Sequence record: OR413585.1
Length of the DNA stretch: 64,000 nt
Direction: 5' to 3' (one strand)
A program made the position numbers and the translations under genes. This document shows, one piece after another, positions 32,350-47,084 of this stretch (position 1 is the first letter of the stretch; every line of letters starts with the position of its first letter). The notes below the pieces were generated by a model that did no database searches, was not told the DNA's origin, and was given only the letters and a program-made list of their open reading frames with translations.

Positions 32350-33387
32350 GTGAAACAATATCTTGAGACGATGCAGAATATTCTGGATGAAGGGCATGTT
32401 AAAGGCGATCGTACTGGGACAGGGACGCTCTCCGTCTTTGGTCGCCAAATGCGTTTTGATTTGCGCAAAGGTTTCCCGCTAGTCACGACTAAGAAACTCC
32501 ACCTGCGTTCTATTATTCACGAACTGCTGTGGTTCCTTAGTGGCGATACCAACACCAAATATCTGGAAGATAACGGCGTTACCATTTGGCGGGAGTGGCA
32601 AGATGAAAATGGGAACCTTGGCCCCCTGTATGGGGAACAGTGGAGACGTTGGAAAGATGTGAAACTGGTGCCTAAGAAAAATGCAGCTTTACTCGAGAAA
32701 CTGCAAGATGCAGGATACGTGGATTATGGCGACGCGGACGACGGTTCACAAATGTTCGATGCGCGTGTACTTCTGAAACTGCACGACCAAATCTCTAAGG
32801 TGATTGACCAACTGCGTAACGATCCTGACAGTCGCCGTATTATTGTCAGCGCATGGAACGTGGGTGAGTTGGATCAAATGGCGTTAGCTCCGTGTCATGC
32901 GTTCTTTCAGTTCTACACTCGTGAGCTGTCTATCGACGAGCGTCTTGATTGGTTTGAAAAGAACCTTCCAGATCAATTTAACGATTCCCGCTTTAGTAAT
33001 GAAGCTGTAGCAGATGACGCAGTGTTCCACGTTGAGATGGACGCACTTGAAATACCTCGCCGCATTCTTTCATGTCAGCTGTATGCACGTTCCCAAGACT
33101 TCTTCCTGGGAACACCGTTCAACATCGCGTCTTACGCATTACTCGTACACATGGTAGCTCAGCAAGTTAACATGGTTCCAGGCGATTTCGTTTGGAGTGG
33201 TGGTGACGTACATCTGTACTCCAACCATCTGGAGCAGGCCAAGCTGCAGCTGACGCGTGAGCCGTTACCTTTACCGAAACTGATCATCAAGCGTAAACCG
33301 GAATCTATCTTCGATTATAAATTCGAAGATTTTGAGATCGTTGGGTATCAGTCTCATGAAAAAATATCTGCGCCTGTCGCTATCTAA
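32350..33387 (+). CDS. thyA: thymidylate synthase
   Basis: [62 protein letters not shown]; GTG start 32350. Confidence 0.97.
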
Positions 33388-34185: not shown

Positions 34186-34953
34186 ATGATGAAACTCTTT
34201 GCGTTCTCCGATGAATTCTACACGGTGGAATTCGACGACTACGAATACGGGTTATTAGGGGCCGTCGACATGGAGGACGCTAAACGGCAGCTTCCCACTA
34301 GCGAAATAGAAATCATTGAGATTGGGGAAACTAATCTCAGTGGGATTTTGATGCTGGGGCGGCGACCACGACCTGCGGAACCTGAGCAGGAAAGAGAGCA
34401 AGCGCAAGCGATTTGTCTGGTTTATGAGCCGATAGACCCTGCAGCGATAGCGAAGGTGGTCGATACACTACGGCCACAGATTGGCGTCGCGATTGAAAAT
34501 TATCGCTGGGCTCGTTTCTCAGGCGATACGCCGATATTTTCGAATAAGCACTGGTTGCTGTGTATCAACAACGACACGATAATGGTACCGTTAACAGGGG
34601 AGAAGAATTTTGAAGATAACTTCGTCCCTGGCGAAGAGTCTGTTATCTTCGAGTATACCCATGTTATCGGAAAGCCGAGCTTCTACCAAGTTCTGATTGA
34701 TGTCTTGACTCACGTCGGTCGAACCATCGAATACCACTACTGGGCACGCCAGGCGCGTTCTAAATGGTTCTCGTTGACGTACGTCGAAGGTTGGGAACGT
34801 GTTGTTGAAAAGATTGACGGGCGCTATGAGCAGATTTGGTTCCTGAACCCGGCATTCCGTGAAGAATTACCCGCATGGGTAAAAGAAGAGGCGAGCAAGC
34901 TGACGGTTGGCTTTACTAAGCAGGGCGCGCCGTATATGGTTAACTACAAATAA
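34186..34953 (+). CDS. hypothetical protein
   Basis: SD GGAG; 255 aa. Confidence 0.75.
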   Translation: MMKLFAFSDEFYTVEFDDYEYGLLGAVDMEDAKRQLPTSEIEIIEIGETNLSGILMLGRRPRPAEPEQEREQAQAICLVYEPIDPAAIAKVVDTLRPQIGVAIENYRWARFSGDTPIFSNKHWLLCINNDTIMVPLTGEKNFEDNFVPGEESVIFEYTHVIGKPSFYQVLIDVLTHVGRTIEYHYWARQARSKWFSLTYVEGWERVVEKIDGRYEQIWFLNPAFREELPAWVKEEASKLTVGFTKQGAPYMVNYK

Positions 34954-34964
34954 GGTGAAAACAG

Positions 34965-35444
34965 ATGTCTATAACTCGGATCGATTATCGTGCCGTAGTA
35001 AAAGAACTGTCCAAAGGTCTTATCGAACTGGACTCCGATGAAGCCCGCAACTGTGGCTTCCTGCCACACATTGCACTGAGTGAGTTCCGTACCATCCGTT
35101 ATGGTGCCGGTCGTCAGAAGGGCGTTACAACACACGCCGTTGATATGTCAGCAAAGTTCCACGGCAGCGTTCTGTATCTGGTCCACAATGAATCGTTACG
35201 AAACGAAGTAGTGGAGAAGTTCCATGAAAAGGCTGCCGGGAACGGTTGGTTGACCGTGCACTGTAACTACTTGCCTGAGGGTTGGAAACACGCGACGGGT
35301 GCTGGTATATCCGGCTACGAGAAATTCGGCTTGGTTATTGTCGACGAAGCGGGTTTCTTCTTCAACAAGTTCAGTTACGATAAAATCTATCGCAGTCTGG
35401 TCGACGTAGTAACGCCAGACGTTGTGATTCACCTGATTAATTAA
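34965..35444 (+). CDS. stand-alone single P-loop ATPase-like domain
   Basis: GAGRQKGVTT (Walker A with Lys to Val), VLYLVHN (motif Ia), LVIVDEA (Walker B). Confidence 0.6.
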   Translation: MSITRIDYRAVVKELSKGLIELDSDEARNCGFLPHIALSEFRTIRYGAGRQKGVTTHAVDMSAKFHGSVLYLVHNESLRNEVVEKFHEKAAGNGWLTVHCNYLPEGWKHATGAGISGYEKFGLVIVDEAGFFFNKFSYDKIYRSLVDVVTPDVVIHLIN

Positions 35445-35456
35445 GTAGAGGAAAGT

Positions 35457-35645
35457 ATGGCTGGAGAACTCGGTCGTGGGCAAGCCACAACGTTCATGTA
35501 TCGTGATGGGTTAGGTGCGGATGTAAACATGTCTCCGGATGACGAGATGGTTATCCCTGGACTTGACCCGGACGCAGGTGTGGAAGGTGGCGTTGACCCG
35601 TCGAAAGACGACGACAACTGCACCGGTGGTGCGTGCAAGATTTAA
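35457..35645 (+). CDS. 62-aa acidic peptide resembling the NrdA C-terminal redox tail
   Basis: SD GAGGA; ends PSKDDDNCTGGACKI; followed by a terminator. Confidence 0.75.
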   Translation: MAGELGRGQATTFMYRDGLGADVNMSPDDEMVIPGLDPDAGVEGGVDPSKDDDNCTGGACKI

Positions 35646-35654
35646 AATACGTAT

Positions 35655-35689
35655 TAGGGTGTCCATATGGACACCCTACTTATTTTTTT
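35655..35689 (+). terminator. intrinsic terminator
   Basis: TAGGGTGTCC-ATAT-GGACACCCTA plus T-tract. Confidence 0.8.
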
Positions 35690-35707: not shown

Positions 35708-36664
35708 ATGGGCGAACGTTTCATTATCCAGATTCCGTATAACGTTATTGTTGAACCTAATCAGTACCTGGCACAGATTAATGAGCTTCTGGCTGGATTC
35801 TGCCAACGTCAGTTTGTTAAACCGTGGTCCTTTGAGAAACTGTACACCCTGTGCGTGAACAGTGAAACCGGTCACACTTACGTCGAAGGTAAAGTCTTCA
35901 CAGGCGACCAGCGTTTGGAAATAAATGATTTCGAAATGCCGTGGACGTTGGAAGGTGTCGAGTATCGTGGTACGGTTGATCGCCCGCGTTACGTGCCTTT
36001 GTACACCATCCCACAATGTATTACTAACGTTATGGGTTGGTCTAAAGCGCGTGGTATTCTGGATAACGGCGTCTGGTATAGCCAAGCCACCAAACTCTAC
36101 GAAGAAGACGGTGAAGCAGCAACCGGCATCAGCAAAACCAAAGAACGTCTTATCATGGACGGCCTAGGCGATGCAATGGTGGTACTGGTTAACGTCAACG
36201 CCTTGGTAGGTATGCCATCCAAGTTGGTTTCTGTCATGCTGTCCCGTGGGCGCGCACGTCTCGAAAAGAACGTTCCATTTGGCGATGCCCATCGCTTGTT
36301 CCACAAAATGCGATTGGCCTTCACGTTGATGCACGACATTGTCTATCAAGGGGCCGATCGTCGTAACCAGCACCAGGGCACTTATCGTTTTACCGAGAGT
36401 GACGACGATCTGATTATCGAATACGAAGAGCAGATGACCGTGGCACTCTATTACATGGAAGCACTGGCGCGAGCGTACAACATTACCCTGGAACAGTGCT
36501 TCTCACTGGCTTGGGATGAAATCAAAGACCGTAAGGGTTTCCTGAACGCGGACGGTATCTTCGTTAAAGAAGCAGACATGACCGCTGCTGAAATCGAAGT
36601 AAACGGTTCCCTTACTGTAAAAGATGAGGCGCTTACCGATGGCGAAGAAACTGTTCACGGTTGA
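35708..36664 (+). CDS. mazG: MazG-like NTP pyrophosphohydrolase with N-terminal extra domain
   Basis: WSKARGI..SQATKLYEEDGE..DGLGDAMVVL..LEQCFSLAWDEIKDRKG..GIFVKE. Confidence 0.8.
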   Translation: MGERFIIQIPYNVIVEPNQYLAQINELLAGFCQRQFVKPWSFEKLYTLCVNSETGHTYVEGKVFTGDQRLEINDFEMPWTLEGVEYRGTVDRPRYVPLYTIPQCITNVMGWSKARGILDNGVWYSQATKLYEEDGEAATGISKTKERLIMDGLGDAMVVLVNVNALVGMPSKLVSVMLSRGRARLEKNVPFGDAHRLFHKMRLAFTLMHDIVYQGADRRNQHQGTYRFTESDDDLIIEYEEQMTVALYYMEALARAYNITLEQCFSLAWDEIKDRKGFLNADGIFVKEADMTAAEIEVNGSLTVKDEALTDGEETVHG

Positions 36665-39962: not shown

Positions 39963-42900
39963 TTAGCTTGCTTTCCGACTTACGTTTAACGACGGTGTCG
40001 GTTGGGTTATTTCCTGCCTACGTGCAGCTGAGCCCGGAGGAGGCACATTTGCCGCTTGCTGGATACTACCACCCCGTGTGTCGTTTGCCGCTCTTGGATT
40101 TGATTTCAAAATATCACGAATCTCTTTCAAGTAATCGCGAGACTGAATCAGTACCTTGAGCTGCTGAACATCTATCGGGTCACCATTCAGCGTTGGCGTC
40201 GATGCTGTAGCATCAGAAGTTGGGGCGGCAATTGGACGAGCTGCTGCGTTAACCTGCGCTTCCGCGCCTGCTTTCACTTTAGCAACATCCGTCGCAGACA
40301 ATCCTTCTGCTGCAGCTTGCGACGCTACGGTTTCGGCCGTTGTTGAGGCATCGGATGTTCCGGTACCGCCTGTGGTTGGTGTAGGTGCTGCTGGTCCTAC
40401 ATTACCTGCGGCGGTAGCCATTGCATCTTGTGCCGCCATGGCCCCTTTCTGCGTCAATGCGTCATCACGACGATTAGCATTATCTGCTGGCAGGTTATCT
40501 GCCGGTGACAGACTCGGGTCATTAGCGGCCGGTGCACCCATTGCTGCTGCCGGGTTGGTTGGTGAATTAGGCGACAAGCCTGCAACCATATCCTTCGTCT
40601 TGCTCGGATCGGCAGCGACTTCGTTGGCGGAAATTGCGCCCATGCGGCGGTTCAGTTCCTGAATAACCCCGTCTACGCTACGTATACGACCGTTGCTGTA
40701 GAAGACGTTGGCATTCCCTCTCAATATTGCGGATGTAATCCCAGGAGCACTCGATGCCGCCATATTCGGATTACGCTTCCATGCTTCCAGGAATTTCTTA
40801 CCGCCGCCTGCACCCAGGAAGTGGTACAGATAAGCCACGGCTGGAGGTGGTGCTTTACCACCCAGGTCACGTTGTGCTTTTTGGATGTTGTCACGAATGA
40901 ACTGTACACCCAAAATAGCATTCGCCCACGGGTCCATTTGGTTAACACGCGGAATACCAAACTTCCGCGAATACCCCTTCATCATCCCGTCCCACGTGCC
41001 GTTAACGAACTGGAACAACCCAGACGCCGAAGCATACGGGTTTTTAGCGGTGTAGTTAAATCCGGACTCCGCCTTAGCCATTGCTAACGCCACTGCAGGT
41101 GGCACGCCCATCATGTTCGCCGCATCGGTAATCAATGCTTTGATATTCGGAACGTTCAACGCACCCTTTCTACCCAACATTTCTATCGGGTATTTTTCAG
41201 CCAGTGACTTATAATCACCGTCTTTCACATCACTCAGGTTAATCGAAGACGAACCAGTGGTCATTGCAGCGTAGTTCCGCACACCACCAACCGCATCGAC
41301 GACTTGACCCAAGTTACCCGGCACACCACCACTCGTACCCGATGGAATGTAGCCTGAGGCGCGAGCACCGTCAGATGACAAAGAATCTCCCGAACTGATG
41401 TTCGAGTCTTCTTCATCTTCACCGGTAACTTCCAGAGAACTGCGGTTCTTGTTACGATCCTTCCAGCGTGCACGCTTGCCATTATTTTTAATGGCTTTAA
41501 TCATGTTACGCACGGCAAGGTCAGCTTCTTTTGACAACAGCTTCAGCGTTTCCAGCTCGGCTTTGATAGACGATGGGTTCGTGTTAGCATCGCCCCCTAA
41601 TGGGTTGATATTCACTTCCCACACCGACTGTCTTATACCGCCTTTCAAGCTGTAGGCAGTTGACATCATCAAACTGATTTCGTACAGGTAGCCGCCGGTC
41701 AGTTTCAAGTTCAGCGGATCGGCTGTTGGCAGGTAACGCTTCACCCCAACCAAATACGTCATGAATACCGGTAAGAAACGGTCAAAGAACCACCGTTTCA
41801 AACGATCTTCTTTCGGTGTACCGATGGCGTCTGGAACCATCGAGGCGATTGCTTTCTTCCAGTCGCCTTTGTAGCTTGCGGTTTTCACGTCAATGTCTTT
41901 GATGACGTTCTTCTCGAATACCGTAATCAACGTGCGTGTGGCGTTGTCGATGGTGGTAAAACCATAAGTCTTCCAACGCACCGACTCCATCGCATTCATG
42001 TCTTTCTGGTCGAGCACCGCGTTCCAGTCTACCTGAATCTGAACCTGCTCTGTTCCGTCTTCCCAACCTTCTACCTTCGCCAGATTTTTATTACGTTCGT
42101 TATCCAACTGTCCAAGTTTGTTGATAGCTTCATCAACACCCGCGGACTTAATCCCCTCCACGGCCGGTGCCATTCCGTACTTACGTGCTTTCTTATCGTC
42201 CATTCTGAACTTGATTGCACGCTCGACTTCATTCTGCACTTCCATAACCTCTTCACCGCTCAAAAACTCCTTCGGTGTAAAGGTTACGACGTCCCAGGCC
42301 TTCGAGAAGAAACCTTGGTTGACTTTGCGTGGGTCAGTTAACGAAGAGAACGCTTTCGCATCCTTAGTCATCTTCATTTTGTTGAAGAGTGTCTGCATGT
42401 CCTCTTTCGATACTTTCTTAGCATCGCCGACGTCAGCCAACTGGATACTATTCGGCATTGATTTCAGTGCCGTAATCCAGCGGAGATAAATCGGAATAAA
42501 GCGCTGAAGCATAAACGCTTGGAAGGCCAACATCTCGCCTTTTTCCTCGACGTTAATACCGAACCCTTCAGCTAACTTCTGAACGTCTTTTCCACCTAGC
42601 CCACGGAGACTGGCTTGGCCATCTTCCGCGTAAGACACATACTCACGCAATGCGTCTTCTAAGTAACGCGCTTTCGCCCCGTCATCCGACGACCACTTAT
42701 CGTAATCACGGAAACCGTACTGAGCTAAACGCATCTTATCCAGGTACTGGGTATAGGTAGTCGTTGCGATCTTGTACGCGGCGTAACCTGCCGCGGCGAT
42801 CGCACCACCGATAAGAATTGCCGGCCAGCCCACTGCTGTCACGACGGCAGATGCCGCAGTTGCCACAGCGGACACCGCGGGTGCCGCCAAACGGGTTACT

Positions 42901-45900
42901 GCGAACTTACCAACATTCCACGCAGCCTTACCTAAAAGACCTACGGGTTTTAACACACCCCATTTCGTGATAGAACCGAGTATATTACCCACAGTTCCCA
43001 AGATACTGACGATGGGACCGATGATAGGTAAGCCTTTCACCATATCCCACAGACCGCCAGATTTCCCTTTGGAGCCCTGCGCTTTCTCTTTCTTCTCCTT
43101 ACGTTTCTCACGCCAACGTTTGAAGAAGTTAAAGTAGTCGCGTTTTTCATCACTTTCAGGTGGCTTGTTACGTTTACCGAACTTCGCAAACATGGTACGG
43201 ATGATGCCATCGTCACCGCCTGCACGGGATACTGATTCGCGCATGGTGTTAAACCATGACATCTCTTGCAAGCCAATCATTCGGTCCAAGCGTTCAAACA
43301 ATCTTGCACCTGCAGATTTGGCAGCGTTCTTCCCTTTGTTGATAACCCGACCTGCTGCATCGCGCGCGGTCTCAAGGTCGTCCTTCGCGTCACCGTAGAC
43401 TTTACGGCCAGAAAGACCACCTTTCGCGTTCAGATGACTGCGATAGAATTCAGCGACATCATCATCGCGTCCTGCCAATCGACGTTCAACTTCGTAGCGT
43501 GTAGCAATGTCGTGTCGTGCTCCACGATATCCGTCGAGCATATCCCCAGCCCGGCCTCGGAAACCACTGAACCAACCACGCAGGCGGTCACGTCCACGAC
43601 CAAAGAACGCTTTTGTTCTTGACCAACGCCCACCAAAACGTTCAGACAACGACGATTTCGCACGATCATACGCCCCGCGTACTGCACGACCGATCGTACT
43701 ACCGCCACCCCCGACGCCCTTCTCCATTTCCTCTGTCCAACTTTCGTCTTCCGGATCTCCCGGTAAACGTTGGTTCAACAGTTTATAGATACGGATAAGG
43801 ATGTGGTTGGTTTTCTTGCCGGTTGATGAGAAGAGACTGAAACCACCACCCCCACCATCTTTACGGCCTTTCCACCAACGTGTTAGTGGGTTGTCGGTAA
43901 TCATGTCTTTCAGACGATCGACACCACGTTTCGCAAAACCGAGCACTTTACCCGGTAAGCTCGTTACACGGTTGAACGCTTTCTGGAGACGTGTCTTTTC
44001 TTCGCCTTCCGGAATCTCGTTCAGCCAGTCCTTAATCTTACCAACGATGCTGCCTGCTTTCGGTGACAGGAAATCCAGGAACCTTTTCGGTAGCTTAGCC
44101 ACCTTATTAAAGCCTAAGCCGATCTTACTGGCCAGACCTTGGGTCAGTGCTTGGATTTTCCCGCCTTTATAGTAGCGGAGTTTACCCGCAGCGGCTAAGT
44201 CAGCGGCTGCTAATATCAGATTACCTGCGGAGTCAACAATATCACTCCCCAGCTTGATGTCGTCCAGCGTTTTCAGCTGAACCATTTTACCATCAATGAC
44301 CTGATAGTATTCTCCAGCTTCCAGACGTGCACCTTGCAGAACAACATTACCATGGTCATCGTAAACGTCACGGATACCCAGTAGTCCTTTACCGAAAGAG
44401 CTTACCGCTTCAAAGCCACCACGGACACTACCGCTGATAAGGCCACGCATCCGGGTTAAGAAACCAGGACCTTCTCCGCCACCCATTCCTGCGACTTTAC
44501 CGCGTGCCCAGCCACCGAACTGGTTCAGTTTATTCCAGGCACCCTTAACACCACGTTTCGCAAAGCCACCGATTCCTGCTGCGGTGTCGAACAACACACC
44601 ACCCCAACGACGAATAAGCCCATCCTCACCGATGATAATACGACGGCGTCTACCGCCACCGCTACCACCGCCAGGGCGAGGCGGACCCATTTCTTCATCA
44701 CCAGAACCAGCACCCCCTGCTAACGAAGCCAGGAGAACCCCTTCTTCGTCCATACTTCTGACGTGTTCCAGAATTTTCTGGAGGGTGGCACTGTTGTTGT
44801 TACCACGAATCGCTTCGATGATACCGTCAAAGTTATTCCGTGGTGCTTCTTCGCCACGGTTACGTTGACTCAACAATTCAACAAAGTTAGTCGAAGTTTC
44901 ACCGTAGAGAACCGCGGCTAGCTGCCGAGGCGACATTCCGCGGCCTTTACCACCGCCACGTAAAGCCGGCGGTAACGACGTGTCATCGGCACCACCACTT
45001 GCCCCTTGGTTCATTCGGCGCAGATAGTCGCCTAACGCCGAACCATTTTGCAGCTTACGTTGAATCTCCTGGTCACGAGTCAATGCGCGCCCGCTGCGTG
45101 TCTTACCCATTGCCAAGTCATTAAACAAGGTATAGGGATCGGACAGGTCTTTATCCACGCCGAAGGTGTCACTCTTCGCGTCGTAGTTAAAGATACCCGC
45201 ATCACGCAACGCTCGCTCGCCGTAAATATTCACCGCCTCGTCGATAATTGCCTGACGTTGGGTGATAGATGACTGCACTGTGGAGATTTTGCGAGCCAGT
45301 TCGTTACTTAATTCGTTGCTACCACCAGTAAGACTGTCTGAATGCCCCTGTAACGCTTCCTTAATGCGTTCTGCGGCGTTTCCTGGCATATACCGATGAA
45401 GATGCATCGGGTCTTTCAGAATCGCTTCTACGTCGAATGCGCGGCCCTGCGAGGCACGTGACTCGATATAGTCGGCAAGATGCTGTCGATCCTTCTGCGA
45501 GAGCGTTTTGCCACGGTCAACAAAATCCACAGTGCTGTTAATGGAATTTTGGAGACGCAGGCGCTGCTCATCGTTTGCAACCGCTTTGCGTACACGGTTA
45601 CCGACCACTTTGCGGTCTACGAAACCACGACTGGTGATGTCGTATTCCAGATCGGCATGTTCGCCATAGCCACGACGAACAGATTTGTTAATCTCTGCCA
45701 GCCAGGCAGGAATAACTTCAACCAGGCTAAGATACGCTTTACGGTCAAACTTCGCCGAACGACTTAACGTTTCGCCATTACGCTCATCGAGGAAGGCTTT
45801 CTCACGGTTTAACGGTTGGACAATACCGAGTTCATTCAGTACCCGGAACAAATCCGCCAAAGGTCCTTGCGTTTCGCCTGCGATAGCTGAGTTCGAGATA

Positions 45901-47084
45901 GAGGAAAGATTACCAAAGGTGAACGCGCCCTTCTGCAAGCGTTTCATGACCTCTGGATTTTTCTCCATCTCCTCACGAGTCCATTTCTGGAGTTTCTCGA
46001 TTTGTGGGCCGAGTAGTTTCTTCGCAAGGAATCCGCTACCCCATGCAGTTGCTTTATCGCGAGCATTTGTTTTGCGACGTTCGGCAGTCAACGAAGAGCT
46101 GTCGCTCATGCCGAAATCGTCTTCAACGCCCATGCCGAGAACAGACTCTAACAAACCACGACCTTCGCCAAATATACCAGAAATTTTCTTCTTGGTATTT
46201 TCGCGAATCATGTCCATAAACCCGTCAGCATAACGCAATGGGTTCATCCATTCCGCAGCCTGGCGTTTAACGTTTGCCCAACGGACTTCTGAGAAATCTT
46301 CCTTCGCGTAGTCTGGCAGCGCCGTGTTCTTCACGATGGCTTCTAAAGCAGGCGTGTTACGATCGAACTCCGACTGCTTCATCTTCACGATGTCTTGAAT
46401 GGCGAACAGGGTACGGTATTGCAATTCGAGTTTCTTACGCTCGATGTTTAAGAATACCCCACGGCTTAACCCGGTTAGCAGGTTAATGTCTTTCGCCATC
46501 CCAATCATGGTTTGGTGCATTGCATCCGCGCGCATCTCTTTGATGCTGTCGCGGAGCTTATCCTCTACCATGCGGTCCTGCAGCTGACGTTGTTCGTCGG
46601 CGTCCTTTGGCACGCCTGAGAAAACGTCGCCCAGTTCACGATCCATCAATGCCTGATTAGGATCGTAATTTTGGTAATCCAACTGGTCAGATTTTGACCA
46701 CTTGTCGATGCGCTTAGTAACTGCATCCGGCAAGTATTTCTTCATCGTCGGACCGAGTTGGCGCGCTTGCATCTTCAGCGTGCGCTCGGTCTTCTCAAGC
46801 TCCCCTTTCGTATGGGCGTAAATGTCCTTTGCTGCAGCTGCCGCTGACTGATAACCCTCGTATGCATCAGCTGCCGGCTTAGGCATCCCCTTGAGGATAA
46901 CTTGGTCGCGTTTCCCTTCTGGCCAGATAGTTGACAACGCCGACTTCCTGGCAACATTCAGGGTACTGAGTATCGGGCTTCGTTTTTTCTCGTCTTTGGG
47001 ACGGGGTGGTTCACCGAAATCATCCCAGTCGTCGAGTCTATCTAAATCGATATCATCGAAACCGTCTTTGCCTCTTTTTGCCAT
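39963..47084 (-). CDS. tape measure protein with lytic transglycosylase domain (phiKZ gp181-like)
   Basis: 2373 aa; helical and Gly/Arg-rich; hydrophobic segment; SLT motif MAKAESGFN..SASGLFQF..TW..YLYHFLG. Confidence 0.9.
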   Translation of the reverse strand: MAKRGKDGFDDIDLDRLDDWDDFGEPPRPKDEKKRSPILSTLNVARKSALSTIWPEGKRDQVILKGMPKPAADAYEGYQSAAAAAKDIYAHTKGELEKTERTLKMQARQLGPTMKKYLPDAVTKRIDKWSKSDQLDYQNYDPNQALMDRELGDVFSGVPKDADEQRQLQDRMVEDKLRDSIKEMRADAMHQTMIGMAKDINLLTGLSRGVFLNIERKKLELQYRTLFAIQDIVKMKQSEFDRNTPALEAIVKNTALPDYAKEDFSEVRWANVKRQAAEWMNPLRYADGFMDMIRENTKKKISGIFGEGRGLLESVLGMGVEDDFGMSDSSSLTAERRKTNARDKATAWGSGFLAKKLLGPQIEKLQKWTREEMEKNPEVMKRLQKGAFTFGNLSSISNSAIAGETQGPLADLFRVLNELGIVQPLNREKAFLDERNGETLSRSAKFDRKAYLSLVEVIPAWLAEINKSVRRGYGEHADLEYDITSRGFVDRKVVGNRVRKAVANDEQRLRLQNSINSTVDFVDRGKTLSQKDRQHLADYIESRASQGRAFDVEAILKDPMHLHRYMPGNAAERIKEALQGHSDSLTGGSNELSNELARKISTVQSSITQRQAIIDEAVNIYGERALRDAGIFNYDAKSDTFGVDKDLSDPYTLFNDLAMGKTRSGRALTRDQEIQRKLQNGSALGDYLRRMNQGASGGADDTSLPPALRGGGKGRGMSPRQLAAVLYGETSTNFVELLSQRNRGEEAPRNNFDGIIEAIRGNNNSATLQKILEHVRSMDEEGVLLASLAGGAGSGDEEMGPPRPGGGSGGGRRRRIIIGEDGLIRRWGGVLFDTAAGIGGFAKRGVKGAWNKLNQFGGWARGKVAGMGGGEGPGFLTRMRGLISGSVRGGFEAVSSFGKGLLGIRDVYDDHGNVVLQGARLEAGEYYQVIDGKMVQLKTLDDIKLGSDIVDSAGNLILAAADLAAAGKLRYYKGGKIQALTQGLASKIGLGFNKVAKLPKRFLDFLSPKAGSIVGKIKDWLNEIPEGEEKTRLQKAFNRVTSLPGKVLGFAKRGVDRLKDMITDNPLTRWWKGRKDGGGGGFSLFSSTGKKTNHILIRIYKLLNQRLPGDPEDESWTEEMEKGVGGGGSTIGRAVRGAYDRAKSSLSERFGGRWSRTKAFFGRGRDRLRGWFSGFRGRAGDMLDGYRGARHDIATRYEVERRLAGRDDDVAEFYRSHLNAKGGLSGRKVYGDAKDDLETARDAAGRVINKGKNAAKSAGARLFERLDRMIGLQEMSWFNTMRESVSRAGGDDGIIRTMFAKFGKRNKPPESDEKRDYFNFFKRWREKRKEKKEKAQGSKGKSGGLWDMVKGLPIIGPIVSILGTVGNILGSITKWGVLKPVGLLGKAAWNVGKFAVTRLAAPAVSAVATAASAVVTAVGWPAILIGGAIAAAGYAAYKIATTTYTQYLDKMRLAQYGFRDYDKWSSDDGAKARYLEDALREYVSYAEDGQASLRGLGGKDVQKLAEGFGINVEEKGEMLAFQAFMLQRFIPIYLRWITALKSMPNSIQLADVGDAKKVSKEDMQTLFNKMKMTKDAKAFSSLTDPRKVNQGFFSKAWDVVTFTPKEFLSGEEVMEVQNEVERAIKFRMDDKKARKYGMAPAVEGIKSAGVDEAINKLGQLDNERNKNLAKVEGWEDGTEQVQIQVDWNAVLDQKDMNAMESVRWKTYGFTTIDNATRTLITVFEKNVIKDIDVKTASYKGDWKKAIASMVPDAIGTPKEDRLKRWFFDRFLPVFMTYLVGVKRYLPTADPLNLKLTGGYLYEISLMMSTAYSLKGGIRQSVWEVNINPLGGDANTNPSSIKAELETLKLLSKEADLAVRNMIKAIKNNGKRARWKDRNKNRSSLEVTGEDEEDSNISSGDSLSSDGARASGYIPSGTSGGVPGNLGQVVDAVGGVRNYAAMTTGSSSINLSDVKDGDYKSLAEKYPIEMLGRKGALNVPNIKALITDAANMMGVPPAVALAMAKAESGFNYTAKNPYASASGLFQFVNGTWDGMMKGYSRKFGIPRVNQMDPWANAILGVQFIRDNIQKAQRDLGGKAPPPAVAYLYHFLGAGGGKKFLEAWKRNPNMAASSAPGITSAILRGNANVFYSNGRIRSVDGVIQELNRRMGAISANEVAADPSKTKDMVAGLSPNSPTNPAAAMGAPAANDPSLSPADNLPADNANRRDDALTQKGAMAAQDAMATAAGNVGPAAPTPTTGGTGTSDASTTAETVASQAAAEGLSATDVAKVKAGAEAQVNAAARPIAAPTSDATASTPTLNGDPIDVQQLKVLIQSRDYLKEIRDILKSNPRAANDTRGGSIQQAANVPPPGSAARRQEITQPTPSLNVSRKAS

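Follow-up and report, generated by a model that had tools for sequence, protein, structure and literature searches.

A free-standing gene for a peptide resembling the NrdA redox tail in the Seoulvirus phage SPLA5c and its relatives

The Salmonella jumbo phage SPLA5c carries a free-standing gene whose product ends like the redox tail of the ribonucleotide reductase (RNR) protein NrdA. This is a real gene under purifying selection, and its likeness to the NrdA tail exceeds, as judged by sequence comparison, what is expected by chance. A class I RNR is missing from all three complete genomes of tail-bearing phages that were checked. In NrdA, the residues Cys754 and Cys759 take electrons from thioredoxin or glutaredoxin and re-reduce the active-site disulfide in each turnover. 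We propose, with confidence slightly short of even, that the phage peptide acts in trans as an analogue of the NrdA tail in the thiol relay between thioredoxin or glutaredoxin and the RNR of the host, and that it sustains the host enzyme. The gene lies in a stretch of 64,000 nucleotides, referred to here as the window, which is 100% identical to positions 175100–239099 of the SPLA5c record (OR413585.1; Seoulvirus, SPN3US-like jumbo phage). No description of the tail gene, of its homologue SPN3US gp234 or of the function of N4 gp48 was found in the literature, which agrees with an earlier sequence-only reading of the window that knew of no described equivalent.

The features of the gene are collected in Table 1. 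Direct reading of the sequence bore out the small ORF with a strong Shine-Dalgarno site and a terminator of its own that had been noticed in the sequence-only reading. The encoded peptide is acidic (pI 4.05; 13 Asp and Glu against 4 Lys and Arg), contains 11 Gly and has no Cys other than residues 55 and 60. Its Gly- and Asp-rich composition indicates that it is probably disordered. The conserved module starts with the motif IPGLD, which is followed by VEGGVD, an acidic run and the Cys-x4-Cys-Lys-Ile end. The Pfam search with the 62-aa ORF gave no family at E ≤ 10. The ORF matches the PHROG profiles 38753 (E = 3.8e-46), 14561 (6.2e-16) and 24014 (6.6e-14), all of which are without functional annotation. 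Membership of the peptide in the thioredoxin/glutaredoxin superfamily was considered and discarded, as no Pfam match was obtained, the Cys spacing is four residues instead of CxxC, and folding is unlikely. The string MYRDG, which had also been pointed out in that reading, is present in the ORF but is not conserved in the alignments of the relatives; it is probably a chance likeness and is given no weight.

Table 1. Position of the tail gene, its signals and its neighbours in the window
Feature	Position	Strand	Basis
Thymidylate synthase gene thyA, start of the conserved block	32371..33387	+	annotation; synteny
p255, gp232 homologue, phrog_10453 of unknown function	34186..34953	+	neighbour
p159, gp233 homologue, phrog_2586 of unknown function	34965..35444	+	upstream neighbour
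Shine-Dalgarno-like site AGAGGAAAG	35447..35455	+	5 nt ahead of ATG; read from sequence
62-codon tail gene, homologue of SPN3US gp234 / SPN3US_0234	35457..35645	+	annotated hypothetical; PHROG matches
Variable N-terminal half, residues 1–32	35457..35552	+	alignments of relatives
Conserved C-terminal module, residues 33–62	35553..35642	+	alignments, codon comparison
NrdA-like tail, residues 48–62	35598..35642	+	10/15 identical to E. coli NrdA 747–761, end to end
Cys55 codon, aligned with NrdA Cys754	35619..35621	+	family-invariant
Cys60 codon, aligned with NrdA Cys759	35634..35636	+	family-invariant
Intrinsic-terminator-like hairpin, 10 pairs (6 GC), then T-run	35655..35688	+	
MazG-like nucleotide pyrophosphohydrolase	35708..36664	+	directly downstream of the tail gene

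In the BLASTP comparison, residues 48–62 of the ORF aligned with residues 747–761 of E. coli K-12 NrdA with 10 identities in 15 positions (pairwise E = 5e-5). The match is short, 15 residues and 19 bits. The alignment is anchored at the end, both proteins finishing at their last residue (62 and 761, respectively), and the second Cys of the phage peptide is located at the same distance from the free C-terminus as Cys759 of NrdA (60/62 and 759/761). When a profile of 25 family members was compared with 177,635 distinct PDB sequences, all 14 hits were C-termini of the alpha subunit of class Ia RNR and were likewise end-anchored, the best of them with E = 0.017. The hits include 1qfn_B, a 25-residue chain of the R1 peptide; the entry 1qfn is the mixed-disulfide complex of glutaredoxin-1 with the R1 peptide. 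A profile of 8 members reached only E = 2.1 against the PDB, which is not significant, and the single-sequence phmmer search of the PDB gave no NrdA match, only a chance ankyrin hit. The likeness to E. coli NrdA claimed in the sequence-only reading, 10 of 15 residues including both Cys, is thus reproduced with the actual K-12 nrdA product, and the PDB profile supports it.

All 120 Enterobacterales NrdA proteins that were read end in C-x-[SG]-G-A-C-K-I, and the residues that are invariant in the phage family are those common to the NrdA tails. Some family members match the NrdA ending of Pectobacterium and Brenneria over the last 11 residues. The phage peptide and the NrdA tail have in common the Cys-x4-Cys followed by Lys-Ile at a free C-terminus and the acidic run that precedes it. 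They differ in that the phage peptide is not attached to an RNR body and is encoded by phages without RNR, and in that the phage family carries the additional IPGLD, VEGGVD and acidic-Phe motifs; nothing in NrdA corresponds to the two conserved motifs that precede the tail. At the DNA level, no similarity of the ORF to any of 5,426 E. coli genomes was detected, and recent capture of host nrdA DNA is therefore ruled out. The tail residues were either captured from the 3′ end of an nrdA gene or evolved as a mimic of NrdA.

Matches to the ORF were found by tblastn in 72 phage records, among them 34 from Erwinia and 31 from Salmonella phages, besides phages of Escherichia, Cronobacter and Proteus; one microvirus record among the matches is a chance hit. 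Large protein searches returned 14 and 26 family members, every one of them 39–157 aa in length. Only small proteins were likewise obtained in a profile search over 1.84 billion representatives; in a library of this size, tails as short as those of NrdA do not attain E ≤ 0.001. The N-terminal half of the peptide varies freely among the relatives, whereas the last 30 residues or so are strongly kept. Across 25 diverse members, no substitution is seen at G45, D47, C55, G58, C60 or K61, and hardly any at the Ala and the terminal Ile/Leu of the C-x-x-G-A-C-K-I end. The Cys pair, on whose conservation the idea of a redox peptide had been made to depend, is accordingly intact in the alignment of these members. 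Within the last 20 codons, 12 of the 13 codons that differ from those of Cronobacter phage CR5 are synonymous. The same 20 codons are 47% identical to those of Alexandravirus at the DNA level, yet 11 of the 20 residues are retained. A separate observation concerns the SPFM phage records LR535901, LR535903–LR535908 and LR535911–LR535913, which match the window between 34900 and 36700 in about 30 shuffled pieces. This region of the SPFM records yields odd chimeric proteins, which suggests that the genomes were misassembled here as deposited.

The sequence-only reading had seen no nrdA body upstream of the ORF and had asked whether nrdAB genes are encoded elsewhere in the genome. With E. coli NrdA and NrdB as queries, tblastn of the whole 239-kb SPLA5c genome detected the tail itself only. 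The PF02867 barrel is likewise missing, with no Pfam domain in the tail ORF and no NrdA or NrdB body in the 239-kb genome. None of the 258 annotated SPLA5c features is an RNR, a thioredoxin or a glutaredoxin, class II and class III RNRs being excluded by annotation only. The tail gene is thus not the end of a phage nrdA. The nucleotide-metabolism genes of SPLA5c are thyA and those encoding DHFR, thymidylate kinase and MazG. NrdA and NrdB bodies are also missing from the Erwinia phage pEa_SNUABM_1 (Alexandravirus, 267 kb), in which no RNR is annotated, and from the N4-like phage Jura. Searches with NrdA gave the tail as the best hit in each of the three genomes, in Jura with E = 0.017 over 33 residues. 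Phage N4 is described as lacking both rnr and trx, unlike the N4-like roseophages (PMC2784036).

These searches bear on the view that the tail gene is a non-functional remnant or the terminal exon of a lost, split or frameshifted phage nrdA. Such an origin could be expected in so far as phage nrdA is often split, with C-terminal fragments of 166–554 aa standing alone in viral contigs, and phiKZ-type relatives have an RNR of their own; in the chimallivirus phiKZ its knockdown impairs the phage (PMC12571901). However, no similarity to NrdA or NrdB apart from the tail was found in any frame of the genome, and the missing partner ORF in SPLA5c, pEa_SNUABM_1 and Jura contradicts the view. The gene is moreover free-standing in 72 phage records, is under strong purifying selection across genera and has its own Shine-Dalgarno site and terminator. 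We give a remnant a very slight chance. Many phage nrdA genes in IMG/VR are split, and their separate C-terminal ORFs of 166–554 residues have the same tail ending; tail-only genes may plausibly have evolved from such fragments, as far as can be read from the sequences. Split RNRs, such as intron- or endonuclease-split phage nrdA and the class II enzyme NrdJa/NrdJb of Pseudomonas aeruginosa, resemble the present case in that the redox tail and most of the catalytic subunit are located on different polypeptides. They differ in that their fragments retain part of the catalytic barrel and have the partner ORF in the same genome. As neither barrel sequence nor partner ORF is present in SPLA5c, any partner of the peptide must be the host enzyme.

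The block that leads from thyA through p255, p159 and the tail gene to mazG is kept in Seoulvirus, in the Erwinia jumbo phages and in CR5. The location of the gene in a thyA–mazG nucleotide cluster, which had been pointed out before, is therefore supported by the annotation and by synteny across lineages. Nucleotide genes are also found near more distant members of the family. One of these has a dUTPase-like ORF just upstream of the tail gene, and others have dNMP-kinase-like, ThyX-like and dUTPase-like ORFs downstream, all of them named from their N-terminal sequences; an annotated dCMP deaminase and a thyA-like gene detected by tblastn are located near the tail gene of further members. The context of one distant member is uncharacterised phage sequence.

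Neither p159 nor p255 has a Pfam family, their PDB profile searches give chance hits only, and their AlphaFold2 models (pLDDT 33 and 42) are unusable. The assignment of p159 as an NTPase was dropped, as its Walker-B-like hhhhDEAG is not conserved in the relatives. The ORF of p159, starting at 34965, shares its reading frame with the tail ORF, one TAA and four codons lying between them. Readthrough from p159 into the tail was rejected, as this arrangement is not conserved: the gene order in CR5 and the frame in Alexandravirus are different. In the IMG/VR contig 3300011862_000001, no stop separates the p255 homologue from the tail peptide, and the two form a single ORF of about 313–355 codons; p159 is absent from this contig, and tblastn detects the thyA homologue in three separate pieces. 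At the level of sequence, this natural fusion links p255 functionally to the tail. Further downstream, the window contains a 2373-residue ORF (39963–47084, minus strand) that is annotated as a tail fiber protein and has long Gly/Ala-rich and charged low-complexity stretches.

The gene neighbourhood also speaks to the idea that the peptide is a RiPP precursor processed by radical SAM enzymes. The SPLA5c genome encodes two adjacent radical SAM proteins of 441 and 303 aa (OR413585.1, 150057–152292), in which no SPASM domain was detected. Their presence and the small, Cys-containing peptide would suit a RiPP, but the radical SAM genes are located about 58 kb away, are without SPASM and adjoin the tail gene in no relative; the neighbours of the tail gene are thyA, MazG and proteins of unknown function. 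The pattern of conservation is also the reverse of that expected, with a conserved, NrdA-matching C-terminus and a variable N-terminus. The candidate failed for lack of an adjacent maturation enzyme, a conserved leader and a variable core, and it is the least probable of the readings considered here.

The occurrence of the tail outside the family was examined by scanning IMG/VR with a DNA pattern for D-x-C-x-x-G-A-C-K-I-stop, which gave 98 stretches, 80 of them listed. Similarity to the NrdA body was present in 41 of the 80 listed stretches, which represent full-length nrdA genes or split fragments. The other 39 of these 80 are without an NrdA body and consist of 38 small ORFs of 47–129 codons and the p255 fusion. 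The small ORFs comprise the gp234 family and at least five other types that differ in the sequence before the tail, several of which are located near thyA-like genes. One such second type (45–69 aa), found on jumbo contigs of 262–268 kb, ends in RDGGGEVV...C-E-[SG]-G-[AG]-C-K-I. It is situated 1.5–4 kb from a thyA-like gene, and the phages that carry it are close to Alexandravirus in genome size.

The tail is also found on a folded scaffold. The N4 gp48 homologue of N4-like coliphages consists of a PF13876 (Phage_gp49_66) domain and an acidic-C-x-G-G-G-C-K-I tail, which is kept in six N4-like contigs at 52–58% overall identity. The gene that follows the gp48 homologue in Jura encodes a Tad2-like (Thoeris anti-defence 2) domain. 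N4 gp48 shares with the phage peptide the acidic-Cys-x4-Cys-Lys-Ile end and is conserved in enterobacterial N4-like phages, which are also without RNR. It differs in that the tail is fused to a folded domain of about 100 residues instead of belonging to a disordered acidic peptide, and in that the gene is located at the end of the replication module and not in a thyA–mazG cluster. These comparisons suggest that unrelated scaffolds have acquired the tail module on several occasions.

A member of the tail family is also encoded by cells. In Neisseria, an ORF of 42–69 residues, with VEGGVD and the tail ending, is located between iscS and iscU, the flanking genes being confirmed by NCBIfam. It is found at this position in hundreds of Neisseria contigs and corresponds to NMO_1220 of Neisseria meningitidis alpha14 and to a cluster of 43–45-residue proteins; a PDB search with the Neisseria member alone gave nothing useful. 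Its presence in the isc operon hints that the phage peptide has a counterpart in cells. The description of the ORF as a free-standing copy of the NrdA tail was thus confirmed for the phage gene, but it had missed the other scaffolds, namely N4 gp48 and the further small ORFs, as well as Neisseria.

Since the Neisseria member is situated in the isc operon, away from the nrd genes, it could have a more general thiol or metal function. Applied to the whole family, this would make the peptide a general thiol/metal peptide, such as a persulfide or Fe-S/Zn ligand or a redox buffer, that merely shares an end recognised by glutaredoxin or thioredoxin. A dimer could bind a metal through the two Cys of each peptide, and the conserved motifs upstream of the tail are not NrdA-like. 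On the other hand, the phage genes are found in the context of nucleotide metabolism and not of Fe-S assembly, and the G-A-C-K-I at the free C-terminus matches NrdA with a precision that a generic metal site does not need. We consider a general thiol/metal peptide distinctly unlikely.

For the action of the peptide as an NrdA-tail analogue we propose the following route. A phage without RNR would have to draw its dNDPs from the host enzyme. Host glutaredoxin-1 or thioredoxin would reduce the free peptide, as with the isolated R1 tail peptide, and the reduced peptide would hand its electrons either to the active site of NrdA or to the tail that NrdA itself carries. Additional binding may come from the conserved motifs ahead of the peptide's tail. 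The host RNR would in this way be kept turning over during phage DNA synthesis. We infer that the peptide binds NrdA, glutaredoxin or thioredoxin, that it transfers electrons and that it activates the enzyme rather than inhibits it. The exit of the tail, its re-reduction and its re-entry have been discussed as limiting RNR turnover, and a second route for the reductant raises RNR activity (PMC4078304). Phage redoxins, such as the T4 thioredoxin NrdC, NrdH and the trx that accompanies rnr in roseophages, are comparable in that they too are phage auxiliary genes for the electron supply of ribonucleotide reduction (PMC2784036). They are, however, folded CxxC proteins that serve a phage RNR, whereas the phage peptide copies the acceptor tail of the enzyme.

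The native tail owes its high local concentration to its tether. A free peptide has no such tether, and competition is therefore as plausible a priori as help. The peptide might thus be a competitive decoy that, like Sml1, inhibits the regeneration of host RNR and lowers or re-times host dNDP synthesis. It would do so at the site of the native tail on NrdA, at the groove for the beta tail through its acidic-Phe motif, or by titration of glutaredoxin-1 or thioredoxin. The likeness to the tail serves this view equally well, and an untethered mimic competes naturally. Of 57 distinct small proteins, 41 have an acidic-Phe motif of the DDxF or LDFDDF type ahead of the tail, where 15.9 would be expected from shuffled sequences. 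The motif bears a loose resemblance to the acidic-hydrophobic end of E. coli NrdB; in the ORF of the window itself, the acidic-hydrophobic motif of the family is degenerate, in the N-terminal half. The yeast proteins Sml1 and Spd1 offer what may be a functional analogy, being likewise small, acidic and disordered. Such small acidic RNR inhibitors of yeast compete with the C-terminus of R1, as Sml1 does with the R1 C-terminal domain, according to Zhang et al. 2007 as cited in PMC4078304. The two are unrelated to the phage ORF in sequence, for which no Pfam hit was obtained at E ≤ 10; they inhibit RNR, have no redox Cys pair and are part of the checkpoint control of eukaryotes.

Several points weigh against a decoy. 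Blocking the sole source of dNDPs looks self-defeating for phages that have genomes of 70–270 kb and no class I RNR of their own in the three checked, and the gene is embedded among enzymes of dNTP supply. The lack of a class I RNR in the three genomes, together with the dNTP-gene neighbours, therefore makes a decoy less favoured. In addition, the cellular homologue is stably retained in Neisseria. We consider inhibition of the host RNR rather unlikely, and the genomic distribution leans towards support of the enzyme over its inhibition.

The third way to use such a tail would be as a bait with which a different process of the phage obtains host thioredoxin or glutaredoxin, comparable to the association of T7 DNA polymerase with thioredoxin. 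Glutaredoxin is known to bind the isolated R1 tail peptide, which is represented among the profile hits by 1qfn_B, and neither N4 (PMC2784036) nor SPLA5c (by its annotation) encodes a thioredoxin or glutaredoxin. In the jumbo phages, however, the gene shows no link to replisome genes, its context being dNTP metabolism, and beyond the tail, Pfam and PHROG searches suggest no enzyme-docking surface of a known type. Redoxin capture for another process has in our view a small chance only. A shuttle, a recruiter of thioredoxin or glutaredoxin and a decoy are inseparable by sequence, and the choice of a shuttle among them is to be understood accordingly.

Taking the phage and Neisseria genes together, we consider it a serious but tentative possibility that they represent a widespread and so far undescribed group of bipartite "enzyme-tail" peptides. 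These would consist of an acidic-hydrophobic anchor and a Cys-x4-Cys-Lys-Ile shuttle, would be either free or fused to a domain, and would act in trans on cellular RNR in Enterobacterales phages without RNR and in Neisseria.

Ribonucleotide reduction limits DNA synthesis, and the known strategies of phages are to encode their own RNR together with redoxins or to rely silently on those of the host. If the proposed role is true, a peptide consisting of the tail only would be a third strategy of phage dNTP supply and a rare natural case of an element of a catalytic cycle supplied in trans across species. It would explain the dNTP supply of phages that have a high demand and no RNR, such as the 240-kb jumbo phages and N4, which has a very large burst. 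The peptide would also offer a natural means of probing how the tail docks in class Ia RNR, a step that is poorly resolved, and N4 gp48 and several "hypothetical" phage families would gain a function. A virus could then drive, or a cell tune, ribonucleotide reduction without encoding the enzyme.
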